Below are positions 29,507-63,800 of a stretch of DNA of 64,000 nt, in pieces. How positions within the stretch are numbered: the stretch's first letter is position 1; each line of letters begins with the position of its first letter. Origin of the DNA: Magallana gigas (Eukaryota); the NCBI RefSeq assembly GCF_963853765.1, contig NC_088858.1:5766001-5830000 (forward strand). Reading direction: 5' to 3'. The position numbers and the translations under genes were made by a program. Below the pieces are notes generated by a model. The model worked only from the letters and a program-made list of their open reading frames with translations, did not search any database and was not told the origin of the DNA.

Positions 29507-32500
29507 ATGGGTACTAAAGCCTCCGTGCAGGGTTCCTCCAGAACCAATGTTAAGAAGAATGGAGAACCCCGGGAGCCGGACGAGGAAGATGTGAGTGACG
29601 ATTCGTTATATCATCATATTATAAATAGCTTTGTCTGTCTATGAATTATTGACCAAGAAAAATGATAAAATTTTCAAACAATCGAAATATAATGATATTG
29701 TAACGTTATCGTTTTTTTATAGCGTATTTTATGTACCACGTATGTACCATGTAATAAATAAAGTACCAGCTGTTTAAAACAGATTGATTGTATTACATTT
29801 GTTCGATTTTTTTTAGGTTGACGTTCCCGAATTTCCACCTGATGAAGACTACCCTCCCCCAAAACAAAACTCGCAGAAAAAGAACGACATTTACGAACCT
29901 TCGCGGTACAAGGACGTCCATAAGCACGTTAAAAATGTACCTCGGTTTTATTCAAAATTAGTTCGCCTCAATTTTTCTACTTTCAAATCCGCACTATAAT
30001 TCACAATTACTAAAATATCTGTTGTGTTATTCTATTTTTCAGATTCCCGCAAAGATTGATATGTCATTCAAAAAATTGCTGAACTACCTTGTACAACCCT
30101 TTAGGACTGATATGCAGAAGTTGCGTGCGCTGTTCATGTGGCTATGCGTGCAGCCCGTCACAACTGCCAGATACAAAAGTTTGGAAGGTTATTTCCCTGA
30201 AGATCTTGCTAAGACCCCTCGAGGTTTTATGAAGCTCATCAAGGAGGGGAAGGCTTCTTATGCATCCCTGTTTGCCGTTCTGTGCAGGTAAAACACAAAT
30301 TACGATATGTCAAACGATTTCTATATGACCTTTAATTAACCTTACAAAGTTAAAACCTGCACGCATAGTTCATATCAGTTTCACGAAAACATGAATTCAA
30401 TTATTATAGAAAGGTGCAAACACAATTTCGTAAAGGGTGGTATATTACTCAAATCCGAATATAAATGAACTATGAAATCATAAATGACAACTATTGATTA
30501 GTGTATTCTGTTTTTTTTTTAATTTGTAGAAGATCGGGGATCAAATGCGTAATAATAAAAGGGGTGTGTAAGAGCGCTGGCTATGAGGTAGGGACTTCTG
30601 ACACACTGAAGAACCTTCGGACCAAGTGGAATGCCGTGTGGGTCAATGACAGCTGGAGGTTAATTCACCCATTGTGGGCGTGTCAGACGGTGGTAGGTAA
30701 GTCCGAGCTCAACGATTGGACGGCGAACGACGACGAGGAAGAAAACACCGAGGGCTGGACGGTGCAGAAAATCAACGAGTTCTTCTTCCTTACAGACCCA
30801 CACGATTTTTTGTACTTCTGTTTTCCCGATGACCCAAAATGGCAACTGCTGATCCTACCGTATGATCTGAGAAAGTTTGTCCGCGTTCCGTTCCTTCAAG
30901 AAGCGTACTTTAGGCTCGGGCTACGGCTCGTCACAGAACAGAGCTGTATTTTGAACGATATCGATGGAGCTGTGGACATTGGGTTTCGAGTTCCCGAAGA
31001 TTACCCAATACAAATGAATTATGAACTGTTTTATAAGAGAGACGAGTCCGATGTTGACCTCGACAGCAGGACCTCTCTGAACAAGTTTGTTGTAATGAAC
31101 TTTGAGGACAATATATGGTCTTTTATCGTTAGGTTTCCAGTTCCAGGTGTTTACAAACTTTCAATTTTTGGCGGCCATATTGATCGTGATCACGTGCCGT
31201 GGATCGCGGACTTCCGACTTATCTGTAAAAATACTCGTGATAACTGTGTTCCCTTTCCCGATGCGCCGTGGATTGGAGTGGGCTATTCATACGAGGCCCA
31301 AAAGGCGGGACTAGCGGACCCATCCCACAAATCAGGAATCATCGTTATGAAACCTCATCAAGAAATCCACATGACGTTAATGATGGAAACATTTCTTAAG
31401 ATGAAAGTGCAGTTTTTACATGTCATTCTGAGTGAAGAAGACCTAAAGGAAAAGTTTTACTTCAAGAGAATAGTTGGGAGGATGGACATTATCGGGAAAA
31501 TACCTCAGCATGGCGACTATCTCATCAAAATTTTTGGGAAGCCTAAGGGTACAAGGGGAGAGTTAAAGAACATCTGTAACTATCTTATTACCACGGAAGA
31601 TCCAAGGCCTTCGGGGAAAAGGAGGAAAGGGTGGGAGGTAATCAAGTGTTATTTTTAAAAAATATATATAAATTACATTTACACGCCAATTAAGCAAAGG
31701 TCATGATGCATAGCTTGTACTTACTGCCAACCGGTAATTAAAATACACTTACAACATAAATTATACTATAATCTTTTTTATACACTGAATCTTTTTGCAT
31801 TGTGTTTCGCACTTTTCATTTTATTGATATTTACTTTATCTTTAAAGAATGCCAGAGAAAAGAATCTGAGAAAAGACGTGAAAGAAGCGACCAATGTGAA
31901 GGACATTGAACGACTGAAGCTGAGCATAGATAAGTTTGTGGGTGCCGGTCTGGAGGATAAAGGGGACTACAGCAAAGCCTCGACCAGGCTGGAGTTTCTG
32001 GAGGTCCAGCAAGGTTAGCTATAAAGTTGTAGTTGAAAGATCTATGAAAATATTAATTTTAACAACGCTTATTATGGCTAGCGATTTTAATAATTTTGTG
32101 AAGAGAAAAAGAAGCATAACTGTTTTGTATCACACTTTTTTGTAGCATTGATAGAGGCAATACAGAGAAGGAACGAAAAAATCCTTATCCCAGCGATCTC
32201 CATGGCGAATGGATCGGGATACAAAAAACGTCTGACTTTATTGATAAAAAAAGCCGAGGAAACTTTGGAGGATTTACGGTGTCTCGGAGGATTCCAACAC
32301 CCGATTCCAGACCTCAACAAACCAATCATTGCAGAGCTTATGAACTACGTCAGCCCACCATTAATCGTCCGTGACATCATGACTGCAACCTTCCTTCTGC
32401 TGGGCGAAACAGAGGAAGAACTAAAGGTACATATTTGTTGTTATCCAATGCCATTAGAATTCATGTTCATTTGTTTCAAACAAATGACAGGGGTATTACT

Positions 32501-32952
32501 ATCATTTCATTGTATCAAAATTTAATACAATGGATTGATACTTACACCCTTGTCCTTTTTAACTTTTTCAGTCCTGGGAGTTCATAAGGCTTCTGATGAG
32601 GACAACAGGAAGGAACAGTCTTCTGCAGCGCTTCCAGCGATTTATCCTGACAGAGGTTCCAACAGAGGTACAAACCAAGGCAGAGAATATGTTTAAGAAG
32701 TTCACTGAGGACGAAGTAAGGAAAACCAGCGCAGGCGCAGCCTCGTTCTTTGTGTGGGTAAGTGCAGGATCAGCGCGGCAATTCCTTTACAGTATACTTC
32801 CTTAAACTGAAGAGAATTTATTCAAGCTAAAAATAGTTTCATGATTGTTTGGAAACTTATTGGTCTTGGGATTTTTTTTTCAGATTCAAAAAGTGATGAC
32901 AAAACCCGACCCCAGCCCTGTACCAACAGATGGACAGAAACGGAAAAAGTGA
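29507..32952 (+). CDS. H1: hillarin/KY-like pseudo-transglutaminase with C-terminal dynein-MTBD-like domain (8 exons)
   Basis: MGTKAS start; YPPPK; LRALFMWL; SYASLFAVLCRRSGIKCVIIKGVCKSAGYEVG..KWNAVW..WRLIHPLW; FFLTDP..CFPDD..WQLL; two Ig-like modules; helical C-terminus; ends QKRKK*. Confidence 0.88.
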
Positions 32953-34754: not shown

Positions 34755-37700
34755 ATGGGAGGAGGAGCTAGTAAGACCCCCAAACAGGAGGCACCCACGG
34801 GATATAGCAGTGTACAACCAACACAGCAGCCTGCTGACCAAACCGAGCTGGACCAGAACCAAGGCGTGTCCGTCTCCATTAGGCCCCCCTCTGGGTACGA
34901 GGACGAACCTTCAGGGCCACGGAGAGAGTCTGACACCCCCAATTCTCCGGCGGAGGGATATCGGAGTGATGGGGTCAGCGGGGGCATTCTCGATCCCCTG
35001 CAGGAAAACACCAAAGATGCGGTAAGGGGCGCCGGTATGGTGTAGAACATTATTACTTCAATCTTTGATGGGTTGAAATGAAAATGATACATTCTTAAAT
35101 TGACTATTACAGTCTAGTGAATAGAAGTCAATAACGATTATTTAATTAAAATTATTGTTCCGGAGAAAAGGACGCCTTGATAAGTTTGATTTTTCTCAAT
35201 GTACAAAAAGCCACAAAGTCTAAATAAAGTTTAACGAGGCCTGGTCTAATTTCTTCTGCCCTAGATTTTTGAATGAAATTTTTTACATGAATTTCTACTG
35301 ATATAATTATTATTATAAGATAAAAAAGTAAGACATTTACCACACCGTTTGTTTATTTTTGGAAGTTTTAAGATTTTCCTGACAATTTTATCATAGTTTG
35401 AAAAAAAGTTTGAGACTGTTAAATAATTTCATTACATGTTGAATTGGTAATGGATAAAAATAGCGTTTTATCAGTGCAAAAAGGTCAAAATATCAATTAG
35501 GTGAAGAAATTGTAACATTTTTCTTTATGATCATTTTAATTTTATTTATTTTAAATAATATAAATTTGTATTTGGTGCCATGGTTCATTCCGATAATAAA
35601 ATATAGAGGGAAAATCGGTTTATGTGCAATCTGCACTTTCAGTGCAGAGAAGTCATATTAAATACACCGTAGCGCCAAATGAAGCATATAGACCCCAAAA
35701 TTTTGTTTTTAACTTTGGTTAAGCTATGTGTGTAGATTTAAAAAAAATACTTTAGGAAAAAACTTTAAGACTTTTGATCGCAGGATCCAACGTCCTTAAA
35801 CATACATAACCAACCGACTTACTGCAATGTATTAGTTCTGTATAACTACTAGTATCTTCATTTTTGTTTCATATAGCAACCTAACTATCGGTAAATTTTT
35901 TCTGTAAAATGGCTATATTTCTAAAATCATTTTGCTTGATTAACAATCAATTCATTCTATCATTCTCGTTAAAACCTCTGCTGGCTCCAATGGCTTAATG
36001 TGACATGTAATGACATAGGTCTATTTGTATTCTTTTTTTCATGCTTCTCCCAGGCCAATATTCCTGTTAACGAGACTGGCTACCCTCCACCCAAACCAGC
36101 TGTCAACCGGAAGTCCGACATTTTGAGACCTGCTGACATCGCGGAGGGTGACAAAAGAGCGAAACAGGTACATTCATAATTATCGGTGTAGATCAAACTC
36201 TGCATACCTAAGTGGGCTCGGCAAATTTGTCCTGTCACGTATTTGTATCCTCTTACAAACGTCACTTGTATTTCAAAACAGTGGTCATGCATCTTATATA
36301 CAAATTATGATTAACCTTTTAAAATCAGATAATAAAACATACACTAAGGACTTTCAGTATTCTAATACGTCCCTTGGTCAAAGCATATACATTTTATTCA
36401 ATCTATGATGGCTGTTACTCATTAATTAGATCAAACCTGGAGACGCCAACACATTTGAAGACCTAGCTTACCTCCTGACGAAAGGGATGTCACGTGATGT
36501 CCAGCAAATTCGGGCTATCTTCTCCTGGGTCGTTACACAGAATGTTCAAGAGATTGAATTCCCCGCAAACGTTATCCTGGATTCTCACATGGACATACTG
36601 AGACGCATGAGAGATGGGCAGTCGTCTTATACCACTCTTTTTACATTACTCTGCCGGTATGTGAATGTTAACACATGTTTGGGAGAACTGAAAAGTACGC
36701 CTAAACATTTTGAAGACGAAGTGTAAGTTCAGTTTATGATGCGAATGTCGCTTACAATTTTGTTCTTATTTTAGAGCAGCACATATCCCTTGCGTCATAA
36801 TTCACGGAATTGCAAAGAGCGCTGGATATGAAGTTGGTCATAAGGATTTGAAACATCTGCGGAACTTGTGGAACGCTGTTTTCATTAATGGTGGATGGCG
36901 TTTTGTGTTTCCATTGTGGGCGTGCCGAGCTGTAAAGAAGCATGCGCCTGGAGATTGGACTCTGGTGGACTCAAAGGGTAATAGTTAATGCATATATTTG
37001 ATTAAGTTTACGAATTTTATATTAAAAAAAAGAATTACTCTGGATATAATATTATCAGAATAGTTCAAATACACGACTTCATATATGTAATTTAAAAAGT
37101 ACATAAATTATCAGAACAATGGTCCCGCAAAGACGTGGGGCTAAATTGTGTCTGGGTTTTTATGTTACATGTATACATGCCACTTATCATCAACATTTAA
37201 TTTCATACGTGTATTTAAATTCTATTTAAACTTTGTGGCTTAAATTTGACGTATTATTCACTCTTCAAAGTGACCAATAAAATATTTTAAAACATTAACA
37301 CAAAAAATAACCGCAACAAAAATGGCGCATATTGTGCCAACAGCAACTATAACTGGACCCTGATTCCTGAGTTTGAAAGTTCTTATATCGCAAACCGGAA
37401 GCTCCAACCTTCCAGGCTACGGCGCAGTATCTTTACCAAAACGAGGCCTCTTGTATCAATCTTAATCGTACACATGCTACATAATTAAATGTGAAAAATT
37501 TGGCGTCTTTGTATTTTGTATTAGTAAAAAATCATATATGTTTGATTTATCTTGATATCTAACTTCATATTTTGGAACAGTGAACGATATAAGTGAGAGA
37601 ATAGACATTGATGAAGACAGCGTCAGTACCACCAGTGACCACTATTTCCTTACCGACCCAGAGGAGTTCATACACCGCTGCTTTCCAGATAAGCCCGATT

Positions 37701-40087
37701 GGCAGCTTCTGAGAACGCCCCTCACAAAGGATGAGTTTCTTGACATGCCCTTTCTCATGCCGCCATTCTTTGACTACAAATTAAAACTTCTGACAAAACC
37801 CAAGTGTGTTCTGAGTTCTAAGGACGGGATGTGTAACATCTCGATAAAGAGTCCTCAAATCGAGGACATGTTGATGACCTATGAACTTTACTATGACGTT
37901 AGGGAGTCGGGTTCCTCCTTACCCTCAGGGGTTCCCATGGACAGATGTGTGGCCATTATGCAACAGAAAGGAAAAATCGCTTTTAGTGTTCGATTTCTAC
38001 ATCCGGGGATCTACCGACTCGACATACATGGATCTTTGATAGGAAATGCTTTGTCTTTGTTAGGTTCCTTTAAGCTTGTTTGCAATAAAACCAGAGACAA
38101 CATCAAACCCTATCCCTGTAATCCGGACATCGGGTTTGGTCCGAACCTTATAACGAACCAGTCAGGCTTATTGTCCGAATCACATCACGAAAGTTTAATT
38201 AGCTTTAACTGTAGGAGGGGGACTGAAATAATATTTACAATGTCAAAACAGATGCAAATTCAAACTAAACTGTTTCACCAGACGATAGATGGTCAACAGT
38301 TAAAGGAGTATGTTTCTCACAGAAAGATTGGGAACCAGCTCTGTATCTTACTTGCAATCCCACAGAAAGGAGAATATGTACTCCAGATAAACAACAGATG
38401 GATGGAAGAGCCTGAATTCCAGAACGTATGTAACTACTTACTGGAGGCAGGGGACGGGGAGAAGAAACCACGGAACTACGAGGTATTTTAACATTTTACC
38501 ATACACTTCTCTAAATAACGCAACTTTTTAGTTAAGTACTGTGTTTCTTTTTTAATTTTGATTTGCATGTTAACTGAAAAATGGAATATCAACCAAGCTG
38601 CATTCTTCATGCGGCTTTCCATATATATCGTACCCATTTGGACATGCACGTGTTTTCTGTTTTTATTATAAGACGCCTTCAGAAAAGAAACTAAGATGCC
38701 AACTTCACGAGTCCCTGCGCTCTATGGACCCTGCTTTTGTTAAGCGCGCTATCGACCAGTTTTGTAAGTCTGGTCTGGAGGACAGCGGGGAGACCCAGCA
38801 GGCCCGGGACAGACTAGTGTACCTGAAGCTCTCAAAAGGTCTGTATGTAGACTGAACCAAACGTGAAAAGCTCTGCTTGGCCTTTACAACATTAGAAGTA
38901 TATTCTGATTGATTTTTTTGTATGAAGAAAAAAGGTTTGATTTATCAATACACCTCTCTAAAACAATCGCCCACCACACCTTAAAAATTGTATGACAAAT
39001 ATAAACAGTTTTAGGAAAGAAAATATAAATTTAAAAAAAAGGAGAAGATAAAACATTGTCTATAACACACGTGTGAAAGCTTGAAAAATGTTAGACGATC
39101 TGATGTATCTACAGGTCTGAGAGACAGCATTAATAGAAGAAACTTGGAAGCTCTAGAGGAGAGTGTCCAACCAGCCAAATCCTCTAAGTTCTCCCACAAA
39201 CTGCAGCCACTGATCCAGAAAGCAGAGGAAGAGGTGGCGGATCTAAAGAAGACGGACAAACACGCTCATGACATTCTAGAAATGAATTTACTCACGGTCA
39301 CAGAACTCCGCAACTACAAGACCCCCAAACCGATAGTCCATGACGTCATGAAGGCCACTTTTATTCTTCTAGGAGAGAGACAAGACTTGCTCGAGGTAAA
39401 ATACACTCTATACTTCATAAGTAGATGATTACAATGAAACAGTGCGCTCAGTATTTTTAGTACTGTATAAAAATGTAAATTATTTTTTGTTGGTTGTTAT
39501 TGGAGGACTGGATGGATGTTCAGAATCTGATGTGGAAGATTGGAAAAGAAGCTCTGATGAAGAGGATTGAAAACTTTGACAAGGACAGTGTAGATGAAAA
39601 ATTGGTCAAGGTGGCAGCACGATGTCTGAAGCCTTATGACGAGGACATGGCGCACGCTACCAGCGCTGGATGTGGGACTTTTTACGTCTGGGTATTTTAC
39701 ATGTTCTATCACAAGTGTGTAGACTGTTCCTAAACCTAGTTTCTGTCATGAAAACTGTTCAATTATATCAGGCAATATTGACTATGTTTTAAATTTCATT
39801 TGTTCGATTAGGCAAACAAGATCGTGTCCGAATATGCAAATGATGAGAAAAACGAGAAGCAACATCAAACATCGAGTCACTATAAAAGTAGTTCCAAAAG
39901 AGAGTACTCCGCCACCGATCCTTACAGCGGTGACGAAGATGAGGGGGTGGATAACGAACTGGACCAGTTTAGTCTTGACGGGGACGTTTCAACAGACCCT
40001 CGGGGTCGGTCCAATCACTCCCACGGTGGGGTTAATAACCCGGATGAAATTCGACATCATGAAGCAGATGACGGGTACAATTCTTGA
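34755..40087 (+). CDS. H2: hillarin/KY-like paralog (9 coding exons) with acidic C-terminal tail
   Basis: MGGGASK start with extended N-terminal exon; GYPPPKP; IRAIFSW; SYTTLFTLLCRAAHIPCVIIHGIAKSAGYEVG..NLWNAVF..WRFVFPLW; MTBD-like exons at ~39265-39830; ends GYNS*. Confidence 0.88.
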
Positions 40088-55400: not shown

Positions 55401-58197
55401 CAATAATTCGAACTGCGTCAATATAATGATACTTTAGTTGTATTTTATAACATATTGAGCTGTAAATCAACTTGAGAGGATTTAAATCCCCTTTATTATC
55501 CCAGTTTAAAATTCGAATTGGCTGTAACATCAAAGCGAGTAACTAAATATGTAATCCATAAGTTTACAATGCTTATACTAAATAATCATGATTGAATTAT
55601 TTTTATTTCTAAACAAAGGGCTGTAAAGATACCATGTGTCTTCATACGGGGTCTTGCAAAAAGCGCCGCCTATGAGGTAGGAGACAGAACTGTAGATAAG
55701 TTGGGGAACTCTTGGACCGCCGTGTTTGTATCCGGTGGGTGGCGCTTTGTGTTTCCGCTTTGGGCTTTTTCAGCCATTGTTGGGCACAGTACTGGAACCT
55801 GGACCCTTGTTGAATCCGATGGTATAGTACCCAATAAAATTCTAACACCCACTAAACACTCCATTAAAAGAGCATATAAAGTCTCAATCACTTGATATTC
55901 ACAGCTGACATCATTTTCTCTTCTTAATTCTTTAATCACAAATTCCCAATTTTGGTTTTCGATTTCATGCGTCACGAATTTATTTCTTTATTACAAAACG
56001 CATTTCCTTTCTTCTCTAGGGCAAGGCGCTAGAGAAACGGAGGCCAAGTCCTCTGGGGTCACCGTCGCCAACTTCAACGACTACTACTTTCTGACCGACC
56101 CCGACGAATTCATCTACACGTGTTTTCCTCATGATTCCAAGTGGCAGCTACTGGCAAAGCCTTACACAAAGCAACAGTTCATAGATATAGCCAACTGTGA
56201 GCAGGCGTACTTTGAAAATCACATTCAAATCAATACAAAGCTGGAATGCTTATACAAGTCAGAAAATGGTGTTTGTGACATTGGTATTAAAAAAGCAAAT
56301 GAAGAGGAATTTAAACATTTGTACAAACTTTACTTCAACCATGAGTTGTCAAAGACCAAATTATCAAAAGAACTTCAGTTAGATAGGTATGTCGCCGTCA
56401 TGAACAATAAATCGGCGGTGAACTTTAGAATCCGTTTTCCTGGTGAAGGAATTTACAAAATGGAGATCTACGGCGGATCGCCGACCGGATTTCCTCTGAT
56501 TTGTTCTTTTCGATTGGATTGCAATGAAGGCGTCAGCAATGTAAAACCTTTCCCATGTAACCCCGAATCAGGGTTCGGGCCAAATCTAGTCACAGTTGCT
56601 GCGGGGCTAGAGGCAGAGTCTCATAAAACAGGCTTTATTAACGTTAAAAAGAACAAAAATGTTAACATAAGGTTCAACCTCAACAAACACGTTCAGGTTC
56701 AAACCGTTCTGGTTCACAACAATATTCAAGAGGAGGTGCTGAGTCGCCATGTCAATCATAAGGTCAAAGGTCAACACCTAGAGGTCAACGTAGAAGTTCC
56801 TCAGCAGGGAGAGTATGCTTTGCAGATAAACACAAAACCGAAAGGGTCCTCGGAACCCTTCAAAAACGCCTGTAACTACCTGCTGGCATCGGAGGACATG
56901 AACAAGAAAAAAAGATTTTATGAGGTAAGTTATGTTTAACAGGTAATTTTGTTTATTTACTAAACACATAGGGTTAAATTCCCCCTTACTTCTTTTGCCT
57001 AAATATATATAGACAGTGACATTAAAAATAATTTTGCGACCCATGGTTTATTACATCATCTTGAATGAGAACCCTTTAAATTTAATTTGGAAGATATGGA
57101 TGAAATTAAAACAGTAGCGAAAAAGTCATGTCTTCAGTACTAGTATATAATATGATCATTTGATTCCTTACTAGAATGCTGCTGAAAAGAAAGCTCGCAA
57201 TGAATTGGAAGGATGTCTGAAGTCAAACGACCCGGAATCCATACAGAAAGCTATTGATAACTTCGACCAGTTTGATTTGGATGACAAAGGAAAGAGAGAA
57301 AAGGCAGAGAGAAAGAAAAACTTTCTCGTTCTCCAGAAAGGTGAGCGATGCTCTATATAATGTGAGTTTTTACATTTTTACATGTTCAATGAATAATACC
57401 AAAATTTTGTGAAATGCAGAACTGAAGGAAGCAATAGCGAGGAGAAATGTAGATGTGCTGGAGACCGCTATAGACAACGCCAAGTCTTCCGAATTCTCGT
57501 CCAATCTCCAGAATCACATCACGGAAGCCGAGCAACTACTGGCAGAACTGAGGAAACTAAAGAGGTTTGCACACGAGGTCTTACAGATGAAGCAGTCTAC
57601 TATATCAGAGATCCATTCCTACAAAAACCCTCGTCCCCTGGCTTATGACGTCATGAAAGCCACGTATTTTCTGCTTGGTGAGAAAGAGGATCATTTACAG
57701 GTACATCATCATCACTGGAAGTTTTGGATAAATTATGTTTCATCACCTCACTGGCTGTTAAATATGGCACTTGAGTTTCATTACTATCAAAGCGGTCATC
57801 AGCAATATCCTATTGGATGTAAAGCGTGTTTTTCTCATATCGTGCATACATTCTTTTATAATAGGAATGGGAACAAATTCAGGGTCTTATGAGAAAATCC
57901 GGAAAACAGGGATTGCTACGGCGCGTGCGCCAGTTTGACACCATCAACGTAACGGAGAATATGGTGAACAGCGCGGCGCAGCTCCTACGTCAGTACGACG
58001 AAGAGACGGCGACGACGGCCAGTGCCGGCCTTGGAACCTTCTATAAATGGGTCAGTAGGTTACAGACGTGTTCGAAATATCTGACCGATTGGCCTATATA
58101 TGTGCCCGGTTTGTAGTTTCAAGGACAAATTTATTGTGCTTCTAACATTGTATTTTTATATTTTCAGGCGTCGAATGTAGTTGGTAATATGACATAA
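52442..58197 (+). CDS. H4: hillarin/KY-like paralog (9 coding exons), closest to H3
   Basis: MGSGGSK start; exon 2 at 52958-53071; WRFVFPLWAFSAIVGHSTGTWTLVE; ENMVNSAAQLLRQYDEE; ends ASNVVGNMT*. Confidence 0.88.
52892..52957 (+). repeat. 2 x 33-bp tandem duplication of the H4 exon-2 acceptor region
   Basis: TGTTAGTTGTTT(T/A)CATATTTAGATTGTATTTAG twice, ending at the used AG (52957). Confidence 0.9.
53051..53890 (+). repeat. Minisatellite, 30 x 28 bp, spanning the H4 exon-2/intron-2 junction
   Basis: Unit TCAGACAGTAGGGCCAATACAGTGAGTG; register holds from 53051 to 53863 (29 x 28); no spacers. Confidence 0.97.
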
Positions 58198-60871: not shown

Positions 60872-63800
60872 ATGGGGTGCGGATCCTCTACTGCCGACGT
60901 CGTAGTCGTCATCCATTCCACCGACCCGTTACAAGAACCCACCACAGAACTGGTAAAAAGGCAGTCCAAAACACTTTATCAATCTAAAATGAAATTTATT
61001 TAAAGTTCCTCAAGATTTGAAACCTTTCAACCTTTCATCGTGTACTTTGGTTGTTTTACCTCATCATCAGTGACGTACATGTATCTATTTTTACAAGTCA
61101 TTATATTAATTGTAACAGGTACATTAATATTATTTATGTATTTTTGTCCAAGGAAGACAATTTTTCTAGCATTTCAATTGTCCTTTCATTATCCAATATA
61201 GAACTCAGTTCCTGACACACTGGATGGGTATCCTGTTCCTAGACCCTCGCACAACCGGAAGTCGGACGTCCTACAATTTCTCAATTTCAAAGAAGTGGAT
61301 AATGATGCTAGAAACGTAGGTAATCAAACCTGCATTTCTTTTCATGTGTAAGCATGCATGGATTCACTGGGTTTTGATTCTCAATGATTTAGGTGGTTCC
61401 CGGTGACTTCAGTACAATAGAGGACCTTAGCAGACGAGTCACAGCGGCCTACCCAAAGACGCTGTCAAAGGTCCGCGCGTTGCTTGTATGGCTGTCTGCT
61501 CAACCTATTCTCAGTCAAAAGTGGTCCACTTCCGCTCAAGCCGAATCTCCAGAGGGCATACTCGGCATGATGCAAAGAGGAGAGATGTCATATGCCACGT
61601 TCTTTGCCATGCTTTGTAGGTATGTTTATTCAACTTGGAGAAGCATTAATGGAAATAATGCTTTCTAAAACTATAAAGGTTATGCGGGTTATTTTTTAAC
61701 AGGGCAGTTGATATTCAATGTGTTATAATACATGGAATCGCTAAAAGTGTCATCTATGAAGTTGGGGAGACTAACACAGACGGACTGACCAATTCCTGGA
61801 ACGCGGTCTTCGTTGGAGGGTCGTGGCGACTTATATTTCCACTCTGGGCATGTCGAAGTGTCGTCGGTCATAGTACAGGGAAATGGATCCTGATAGAGCC
61901 GAAAGGTTGTCGTCGTATAAAGTTTGATGCTTTGAAGAGTTCGTTTGATTTTTCACTGAATAAACTTGTATGTAAAATTTAATACATCTCATAGTAAGTG
62001 TAGTAAGATCAATAATGTCAATTTTTGTCGTTATTTCCTAGATATTGGTAAACTAGAATCCGAGAAAACGACAGGCGGTGCTGTGATACAGCAGCTGAAC
62101 GAGTTCTTCTTCCTCACAGATCCTGATGTTTTTCAGTACCACTGCTTTCCAAATGACCCACTGTGGCAGTTGGTGCCCAAGGTTATCTCTTTGGAAAAGT
62201 TTCTTTCACTTCCGTTTTTGAGACAGGACTTTTTCGAAAACAAACTCAAACTGATGAGCACTTCCTCATGTCGGCTTGAAGCCACACGAGGAGAATGCGA
62301 CGTAGTCATAAAGACACCGGATAACCTGTCGCTAACGTTTTCCTACGATTTGCAATTCAGCAGCAAAGACTTGGATTCAAAACCACCATCTCAAGGACAG
62401 CCTCAGAATTGTGTAGCTATGGTCCATCAGGATAACAAGGTGTCATTTTCAGTAAGGTGCCCCACTGAAGGAGTTTATAAGCTGAAAATATATGGTGGTC
62501 GGGAAGGTGACAAGCGGTGGTTATATTCAAATTGCATCGTGTGTGCTGAAGTAAGCGACCATATCATTCCTTATCCAACTGCCCCAGACATCGGTTTTGG
62601 ACCCCAGAAACTGACAGAGGAGGCGGGACTTATAGCAATGTCTCACAAGTCGGGATGTGTGCAAGTTCAGAGAAACAAAACCTGTGAAATTAGTTTTACA
62701 TTGACGAAATTCGTATTAGTTCATTCTACCTTGCATAGATTTGATGTATCTAGCAACAGTCTTGCGCAGTATGTCTCACAGCGCATACAAAACGATAACT
62801 TGCGCATTGACGTCACCCCACCACAAGATGGCGAATACACTCTCCACATCAACTGCAAAGAGAAAGGGTCAAAAAATGGATTCATGAACGTTTGCAATTA
62901 TCTCTTGAATACTGATGTCAAGAATACAAGATCCTGGGAGGTATGTTATCATTCTTTTTGATGATGAAGCGTGCTTAAGCATTTGTTTATTCAGTCTTGT
63001 GATCTGTATAATTATGGTCCAGAATGCGCGGGAAAAAGTGGCGAGGCAGGATCTCAGAGCGAAGACATTGTCCGTGACCACCAAGAATGCTAAAGAACTC
63101 CAGAATGCGATTGAAAAGGCCAACCAACTTTGTTTAGAAGACAAGGGAGATCTCAAGTTCGCCCATGAACGTTTAGATTTACTTCAGCTGCAAAAAGGTA
63201 CTGCAAAGATAGAAATTGAGTTTTTACTGCTTAGAAGGTTTAACTAAAGGTTTAATTTTTGTTTTAGCCCTGGATGATGGTATAAACAGAAGAAATGTAG
63301 ATATTCTTGAGCCAGCTATCAAAGCGGCAAAAATATCGGATCAAGTGTATAAACTTTCGGACCGTATAAAGGAGTCAGAGGAACTCCGAGACCACTTACT
63401 AACCCTGAAGAGATTTGCACATGACGTACTCGATATGAAGCAGACGACAATATCGGAAATCCATCGCTATTCCATTCCTTCCCCTGTGATATTCAACGTC
63501 ATGAAAGCAACATTTCTACTGCTGGGAGAACATCCACAGAACTTGGAAGTATGTTTTGAAGTTTGAAAAAAGTATGTCATAATTAGCCCCGCAAATAAAA
63601 TTTACTGGGAGTGGGGTTTATTATTTTGGGAATCAACATCTTGGTCTGTAATATTTTTTCAGGAGAGAGTTTAAAAGCTAGAGCAAGGATTTACCTGAAA
63701 ATGTACCATAGATTTTTTTATTTACCATATAAACTTAATTATAGACCTAAAAAATTTTAATGATTGGAACATATTTATCTGGATCCTTTGGGAGGGAGGG

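Follow-up and report, generated by a model that had tools for sequence, protein, structure and literature searches.

Dynein heavy chains contact microtubules through a microtubule-binding domain (MTBD) that sits on the tip of a stalk whose two strands measure about 100 residues each, and the affinity of this domain is set by the motor ATPase, which shifts the two strands against each other by half a heptad. To our knowledge the domain has so far been treated as part of dynein heavy chains only, and we know of no described non-motor microtubule-associated protein that makes use of a dynein-type module. Here we describe five tandem genes, named H1 to H5, on the plus strand of a 64,000-nucleotide stretch of the genome of Magallana gigas (contig NC_088858.1, positions 5,766,001 to 5,830,000; the whole stretch is referred to below as the window). 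Their products combine a C-terminal module homologous to the dynein MTBD with a body that resembles the KY/hillarin/LTD-1 family in its Transglut_core-like region, its KY-type Ig-like domains (PF23265) and the database names of its relatives. An initial annotation made from the sequence alone had pointed to an MTBD-like sequence at the C terminus of H2.

The dynein heavy-chain MTBD (PF12777; PDB 3err, 5ayh, 6kjn, 6rzb) is found together with an AAA+ motor, a linker and a long stalk, all three of which are absent from the oyster module. In addition, only 5-21 residues of return coil are left in the oyster family, the base of the stalk is apparently capped by a helical hairpin, a pair of lysines in the first helix is not conserved, and the flap insertion of the DNAH7 type is missing. 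Relative to described KY/hillarin/LTD-1 proteins, the oyster family shows an MGxxxS N terminus and no LIM domain in the members scanned; none of the published accounts of the family that we found includes the C-terminal MTBD-like module, and it is by comparison with these accounts that the oyster proteins are set apart. Non-motor lipid-anchored or cortical microtubule tethers are comparable by function only: they likewise join a membrane anchor to a binding module at the opposite end (both predicted in the oyster proteins). In the oyster family this second module is a dynein-type one. Full-text literature searches turned up no account of KY/hillarin-like or stand-alone proteins with a dynein-type MTBD. 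The reading that we favour, with a probability of roughly 0.6, is that these would be lipid-anchored KY-type proteins whose motor-less MTBD serves as a passive tether between the membrane or cortex and microtubules.

The C-terminal module and the MTBD of dynein heavy chains are homologous. Comparison of the last 247 residues of H2 with PDB sequences gave five matches, all of them to dynein heavy chains at the MTBD and the best to human DNAH2 (E 7e-5). A family profile (A3), built from an alignment of the whole module in 47 sequences and searched against all PDB sequences, returned 60 matches; again every one was a dynein heavy chain at the MTBD, with a best E of 7e-11. Thus, the resemblance proposed in the initial annotation was borne out. 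The pattern, described there as axonemal, is not specifically so, the best profile match being yeast cytoplasmic dynein. The best PDB matches were yeast MTBD constructs with almost no coiled coil, indicating that the score stems from the globular domain. Exon by exon the signal was weak: dynein accounted for 13 of the 18 PDB matches of the exon-7 profile (E 0.02-6), and the exon-8 profile alone found no dynein in the PDB, this exon being too small to suffice on its own; the full-domain profile settled the point. H2 matched the family hidden Markov model over residues 628-803 with an E of 1e-60. The Pfam MT model (PF12777), suggested as a check in the annotation, has a gathering cut-off of 24 bits. 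P0186, a full-length protein of Saccostrea that is orthologous to H2, passed it with 24.6 bits, as did a protein of the sponge Oscarella (P0111, 26.0 bits), but H2 itself did not (18.4 bits). The database protein corresponding to H5 (P0004) gave no match to this model at E 0.01. Other Pfam candidates for the H2 C terminus were discarded: DUF608 scored below threshold (20.9 bits against a cut-off of 26.3) and receives no support from the fold, and the FH2, Binary_toxB and DAP_B matches to single C-terminal exons were noise far under their cut-offs.

H2 was folded with AlphaFold2 from the spliced sequence aligned with the family, and the H5 product as residues 469-648 of P0004. Both models were confident, with a predicted local distance difference test score (pLDDT) of 94.7 and a predicted template modelling score (pTM) of 0.84 for H2, and corresponding values of 93.7 and 0.85 for H5. 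In Foldseek searches the top 45 matches were all dynein, which answers in the affirmative the comparison with dynein structures that the annotation had proposed. The models contain a six-helix bundle set on an antiparallel pair of helices equivalent to the outgoing (CC1) and return (CC2) strands of the stalk. The order of elements assigned by DSSP starts with a pair of short helices (residues 2-8 and 11-22) and goes on with a CC1-like helix of 25 residues, helices H1 to H6 of the domain (always called helices here, as distinct from genes H1 to H5) and a last helix that continues beyond the conserved Trp. In H2, this return helix could be aligned with dynein helix H6 and CC2 as far as mouse residue 3408. 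Residues E64, Y68, P71, W96 and S147 are invariant among 52 family sequences and W156 is nearly so. In the structure comparison, residues 1-50 of the module resembled generic helical hairpins only; the hairpin would presumably lie against the outer half of CC1, closing the base of the stalk. Models and tail statistics put the length of CC1 at about 25-33 residues and that of CC2 at 5-21 residues across modules. The helical stretch preceding the stalk harbours a spacer repeat of about 45 residues (L..AI....D...LE.AI..F....L.D.GD...A...L.FL), present twice in H2 (38673-38838 and 39115-39200) and about four times in residues 545-813 of Haliotis P0173; spacer length therefore varies.

The peptide given in the initial annotation turned out to be the exact product of H2 exons 7-9, joined in phase across GT-AG introns. 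The interval originally assigned to it starts within the HAHD codons (39265) and ends 13 codons into exon 9 (39850). The exon joints 38838/39115, 39395/39506 and 39691/39812 are all present in RNA contigs (three runs from three studies) as well as in raw poly-A reads. One RNA contig of 2852 nucleotides spans H2 from exon 5 through exon 9 with no mismatch, showing that one mRNA encodes both the KY-like body and the C-terminal module, which is therefore no separate fragment lying next to the gene. RNA contigs also cover the region of the acidic tail (39875-40087).

Across 108 family proteins, the median number of residues past the conserved Trp is 22.5. Thus, the truncation of the return coil surmised from H2 is a family trait. 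The accompanying statement that the chain stops soon after the Trp holds for H4 (9 residues to the stop codon), H1 (22) and H5 (24), and fails for H2, in which 91 residues follow. The 9-residue ending of H4 recurs in the database proteins P0183, P0185 and P0187. The return helix of H2 itself comprises 21 residues, as against about 14 for that of H5 (ending at residue 170) and about 5 for that of H1, which runs into a Pro-rich stretch. The H2 helix is followed by an acidic tail of 70 residues, bringing the net charge of the 91 post-Trp residues to about -12; P0186 has a long acidic tail too (net -10). In sharp contrast to H2, genes H1, H3 and H5 have basic endings (KRKK, KKKK and KTKKK, respectively), and polybasic tails terminate about one-fifth of the family members. 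One may speculate that the acidic tail of H2 mimics the tails of tubulin and masks the domain.

Upstream of the module, Pfam scans identified the KY-type Ig-like domain in exon 5 of H2 (E 1e-38) and in the large exon of H1 (E 1.9e-41). Transglut_core (PF01841) was recognized in P0186 (34.3 bits, cut-off 23), to which H2 aligns end to end; the individual exon pieces of H2 had no PF01841 match because the core is split over exons 3-4. Mollusc relatives are named hillarin-like, ltd-1-like or kyphoscoliosis peptidase in the databases. In the family alignment, the presumed columns of the Cys-His-Asp triad of transglutaminases, placed by the canonical motif, read Q/K/R, N and F/H-P. Pfam scans of H2 exon 1 and of family proteins scanned whole revealed no LIM domain, and no AAA or dynein motor domain appeared in any Pfam scan of window exons and family proteins. 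Candidate first exons with an MGxxxS start precede all five genes (Table 1), those of H3, H4 and H5 being joined to their genes by inference. An MGxxx[STAGCN] start is found in 24 of the 47 family proteins that begin with Met.

The residues through which dynein touches the microtubule include R3124, K3160 and the R3201 region of the yeast protein, equivalent to R3306, R3342 and R3382 in mouse (PMC6125590). Among 52 family members, position 66 (helix H1; yeast R3124, mouse R3306) is occupied by Arg or Lys in 56% and by His in 33%; Lys or Arg is found at positions 105 and 108 (end of helix H3; yeast K3160, approximately mouse R3342) in 81%, and at position 144 (start of helix H6, beside yeast R3201, mouse R3382) in 67%. 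H2 has R66, K105, K108 and H144, although other copies have a better-preserved presumed microtubule face. This pattern favours microtubule binding, which we hold to be somewhat more likely than not; as the proteins have no ATPase, their affinity may plausibly be fixed. We postulate that the N-terminal MGxxxS motif, through predicted myristate often supplemented by palmitate on a Cys, would anchor the protein to the membrane. A transglutaminase-like core apparently devoid of catalytic residues would follow, then KY-type Ig-like domains, at least one helical-hairpin spacer repeat and finally the six-helix MTBD homolog on its mini-stalk, with a helical hairpin capping the base in place of the AAA+ ring. 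The domain would still grip the microtubule lattice via helices H1, H3 and H6. Since no ATPase would shift the registry of the stalk, binding would be static and the proteins would tether the membrane or a cortical scaffold to microtubules.

Several points weigh against this proposal, and some of them also speak for a different one: that a true MTBD homolog was repurposed, the fold being kept and the partner being something other than tubulin, such as septin filaments, another polymer or a cortex protein, for which the oyster proteins would serve as scaffold adaptors. The Lys pair of helix H1 (yeast K3116/K3117, mouse K3298/K3299) is lost, with Lys in 31% of members at one position and Gln in 35 of 52 at the other; H2 carries Asn and Leu there. 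The charge of the MTBD core is neutral to acidic (about -4 in H2, 0 to -2 in the other paralogs), as opposed to about +3, by hand count, for the yeast dynein segment, and H2 and its ortholog P0186 bear long acidic tails. For a change of partner it can also be said that the most invariant residues (E64, Y68, P71, W96, S147 and W156) define the fold and are not surface contacts. In Drosophila, hillarin, the namesake of the family, is reported to act with septins (the septin Pnut) and not with microtubules, and to sit at the cleavage furrow (PMC3718969; PMC3081291). Furthermore, two components of the proposed tether are readings of motifs: MGxxxS is a predicted N-myristoylation site, often with a neighbouring Cys for palmitate, and catalysis has probably been lost in the transglutaminase-like core. 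On the other hand, most members retain basic residues at the three dynein contact sites in helices H1, H3 and H6, many have polybasic tails suited to the acidic tails of tubulin, and none of the present data point to another partner. The link of hillarin to septins would extend to the oyster proteins by family name. We regard a change of partner as doubtful, if far from negligible.

Alternatively, microtubule binding could be switchable, with shifts in the registry of the short stalk, or masking of the domain, brought about by the hairpin repeats, by the acidic or basic tails or by such partners as an EF-hand, a CARD or the KY body. Affinity would then be regulated and not, as the initial annotation suggested, fixed. 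Such a scheme is inferential throughout; it would have to operate with no ATPase and with a return helix of 5-21 residues, too short for the half-heptad sliding of the dynein stalk, and we think it unlikely. Finally, the dynein resemblance might be an artefact, arising either from a chance match in coiled-coil composition or from a dynein pseudogene fragment mis-joined to a KY-like gene. The sub-cut-off Pfam MT score of H2 and the failure of the exon-8 profile alone to find dynein could be taken in this sense. The RNA-supported joints and the conservation of the module rule out the mis-joined fragment, and an artefact of any kind seems most improbable. Passive tethering by a motor-less MTBD is the interpretation that we retain as the more likely.

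An exhaustive search with the exon-7 profile collected 667 cluster representatives (50% clustering) at E <= 1e-3. As opposed to its place in dynein, the module is C-terminal in all contexts found, and its hosts are non-motor proteins of 200-1500 amino acids. It is carried by KY-type bodies in molluscs, Lingula and amphioxus; two Branchiostoma proteins (P0075 and P0100) join the module to a CARD, to a number of Ig-like domains of the KY type and to a transglutaminase-like core, and an Acropora protein annotated as 'Reticulocyte-binding protein-like protein 2a' (P0156) combines an EF-hand with the module. Relatives of about 300-350 amino acids consist of an MGCGxS start, a low-complexity stretch, a helical repeat and the module only, and in Ciona and amphioxus the module stands nearly alone in proteins of 186-206 amino acids. 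It also occurs in tunicates and in a sponge (Oscarella). As judged from these sequences, the distribution spans sponge to chordates. No vertebrate or arthropod member surfaced in word-indexed searches, which are too insensitive to be informative. An Atlas feature search produced unnamed mollusc clusters only, one with PF12777 in 14% of its members, and automated Pfam annotation marks PF12777 on a few orthologs. The presence of the module in a sponge is the ground for placing its origin early. It seems an even bet that the dynein tip left the motor early in animal evolution and became a mobile module, found alone, behind dual-acylation motifs, EF-hands or a CARD, or on KY pseudo-transglutaminase scaffolds, and that it would act everywhere as a motor-independent, registry-locked microtubule anchor.

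The five paralogs were located by tblastn with the H2 exons as query (Table 1). The nine-exon H2 model, in which all introns are GT-AG, predicts a product of 873 amino acids, arranged from the N to the C terminus as an MGGGAS start, the transglutaminase-like core, KY Ig-like domains, a helical linker, the MTBD-like domain and the acidic tail; its identity to P0186 is 58% from end to end. Equivalents of exons 7 and 8 were located in H1, H3, H4 and H5, where the initial annotation had seen the same pattern, and the exon boundaries and phases of the H2 module are repeated in all four. H5 is cut by the end of the window, and P0004, 96-98% identical to its exons, supplies the complete end of the protein. 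The paralogs are under purifying selection, the ratio of nonsynonymous to synonymous divergence (dN/dS) being 0.08 between H3 and H4; as judged from the saturation of synonymous sites, they are old. On balance, H1 to H5 are best described as tandem, old, expressed paralogs of a KY/hillarin/LTD-1-like family. Four database proteins of 1400-1800 amino acids (P0001, P0170, P0171 and P0172) harbour the module twice or three times each and look like adjacent tandem genes merged by gene prediction, showing that other bivalves have the tandem arrangement too. A minisatellite (53051-53890) lies between the candidate first exon and the later exons of H4, hence inside an H4 intron. Just upstream of H1, the segment 26451-29197 contains an intron-bearing gene for a pyridoxal phosphate (PLP)-dependent, diaminopimelate-decarboxylase-like enzyme with the motif GGGLSIPY.

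Table 1. Features of the H1-H5 locus (positions within the window).
Feature	Position	Strand	Basis
Gene H1	~29507-32952	+	tblastn with H2 exons
Gene H2	34755-40087	+	nine-exon model built by hand
Gene H3	~41107-46510	+	tblastn with H2 exons
Gene H4	~52442-58197	+	tblastn with H2 exons
Gene H5	~60872 to window end	+	tblastn with H2 exons
Start of candidate first exon of H1, MGTKAS	29507-29539	+	
Start of candidate first exon of H2, MGGGAS	34755	+	
Start of candidate first exon of H3, MGCGGS	41107	+	
Start of candidate first exon of H4, MGSGGS	52442	+	
Start of candidate first exon of H5, MGCGSS	60872	+	
H2 exons 1-5	34755-35021, 36054-36167, 36430-36656, 36775-36977, 37581-38482	+	hand gene model
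H2 exons 6-9	38673-38838, 39115-39395, 39506-39691, 39812-40087	+	hand gene model
First part of H2 exon 7: hairpin of two helices (domain residues 2-22), CC1-like outgoing stalk helix (31-55)	39115-39278	+	
Second part of H2 exon 7: helices H1-H2 of the MTBD (TELRNY..P.P..VMKATFILLG)	39279-39395	+	alignment to DNAH2 and yeast dynein MTBD
H2 exon 8: MTBD helices H3-H6, from invariant Trp (DW) to conserved SAG..F.VW	39506-39691	+	
Start of H2 exon 9: short return helix of CC2 type, 21 residues past Trp	39812-39874	+	H2 model helix 148-177
H2 acidic low-complexity C-terminal tail and stop codon	39875-40087	+	translation, tail statistics
H1 MTBD-like module	exon 7 32145-32426, exon 8 32572-32757, exon 9 32884-32952	+	exon comparison
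H3 MTBD-like module	exon 7 45515-45799, exon 8 45884-46069, exon 9 46418-46510	+	exon comparison
H4 MTBD-like module	exon 7 57416-57700, exon 8 57865-58050, exon 9 58168-58197	+	exon comparison
H5 MTBD-like module	exon 7 63267-63548, exon 8 from 63864, cut at window end (64000)	+	exon comparison

If the dynein tip did become a mobile, motor-independent microtubule anchor, the proteins that carry it would make up the first class of microtubule-associated proteins to be based on a dynein MTBD while lacking a motor. They would represent a natural experiment on how the isolated tip, with a stub of stalk, behaves once the controlling ring is gone, and the Ciona and amphioxus proteins of 186-206 amino acids are small enough to make in vitro work easy. 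The KY/hillarin family is poorly understood and its mollusc members are annotated merely as 'hillarin-like' or 'ltd-1-like'; the module offers a functional lead for this family. For marine invertebrates and for the invertebrate chordates, the proteins described here are candidates for a class of lipid-anchored tethers between membranes and microtubules.
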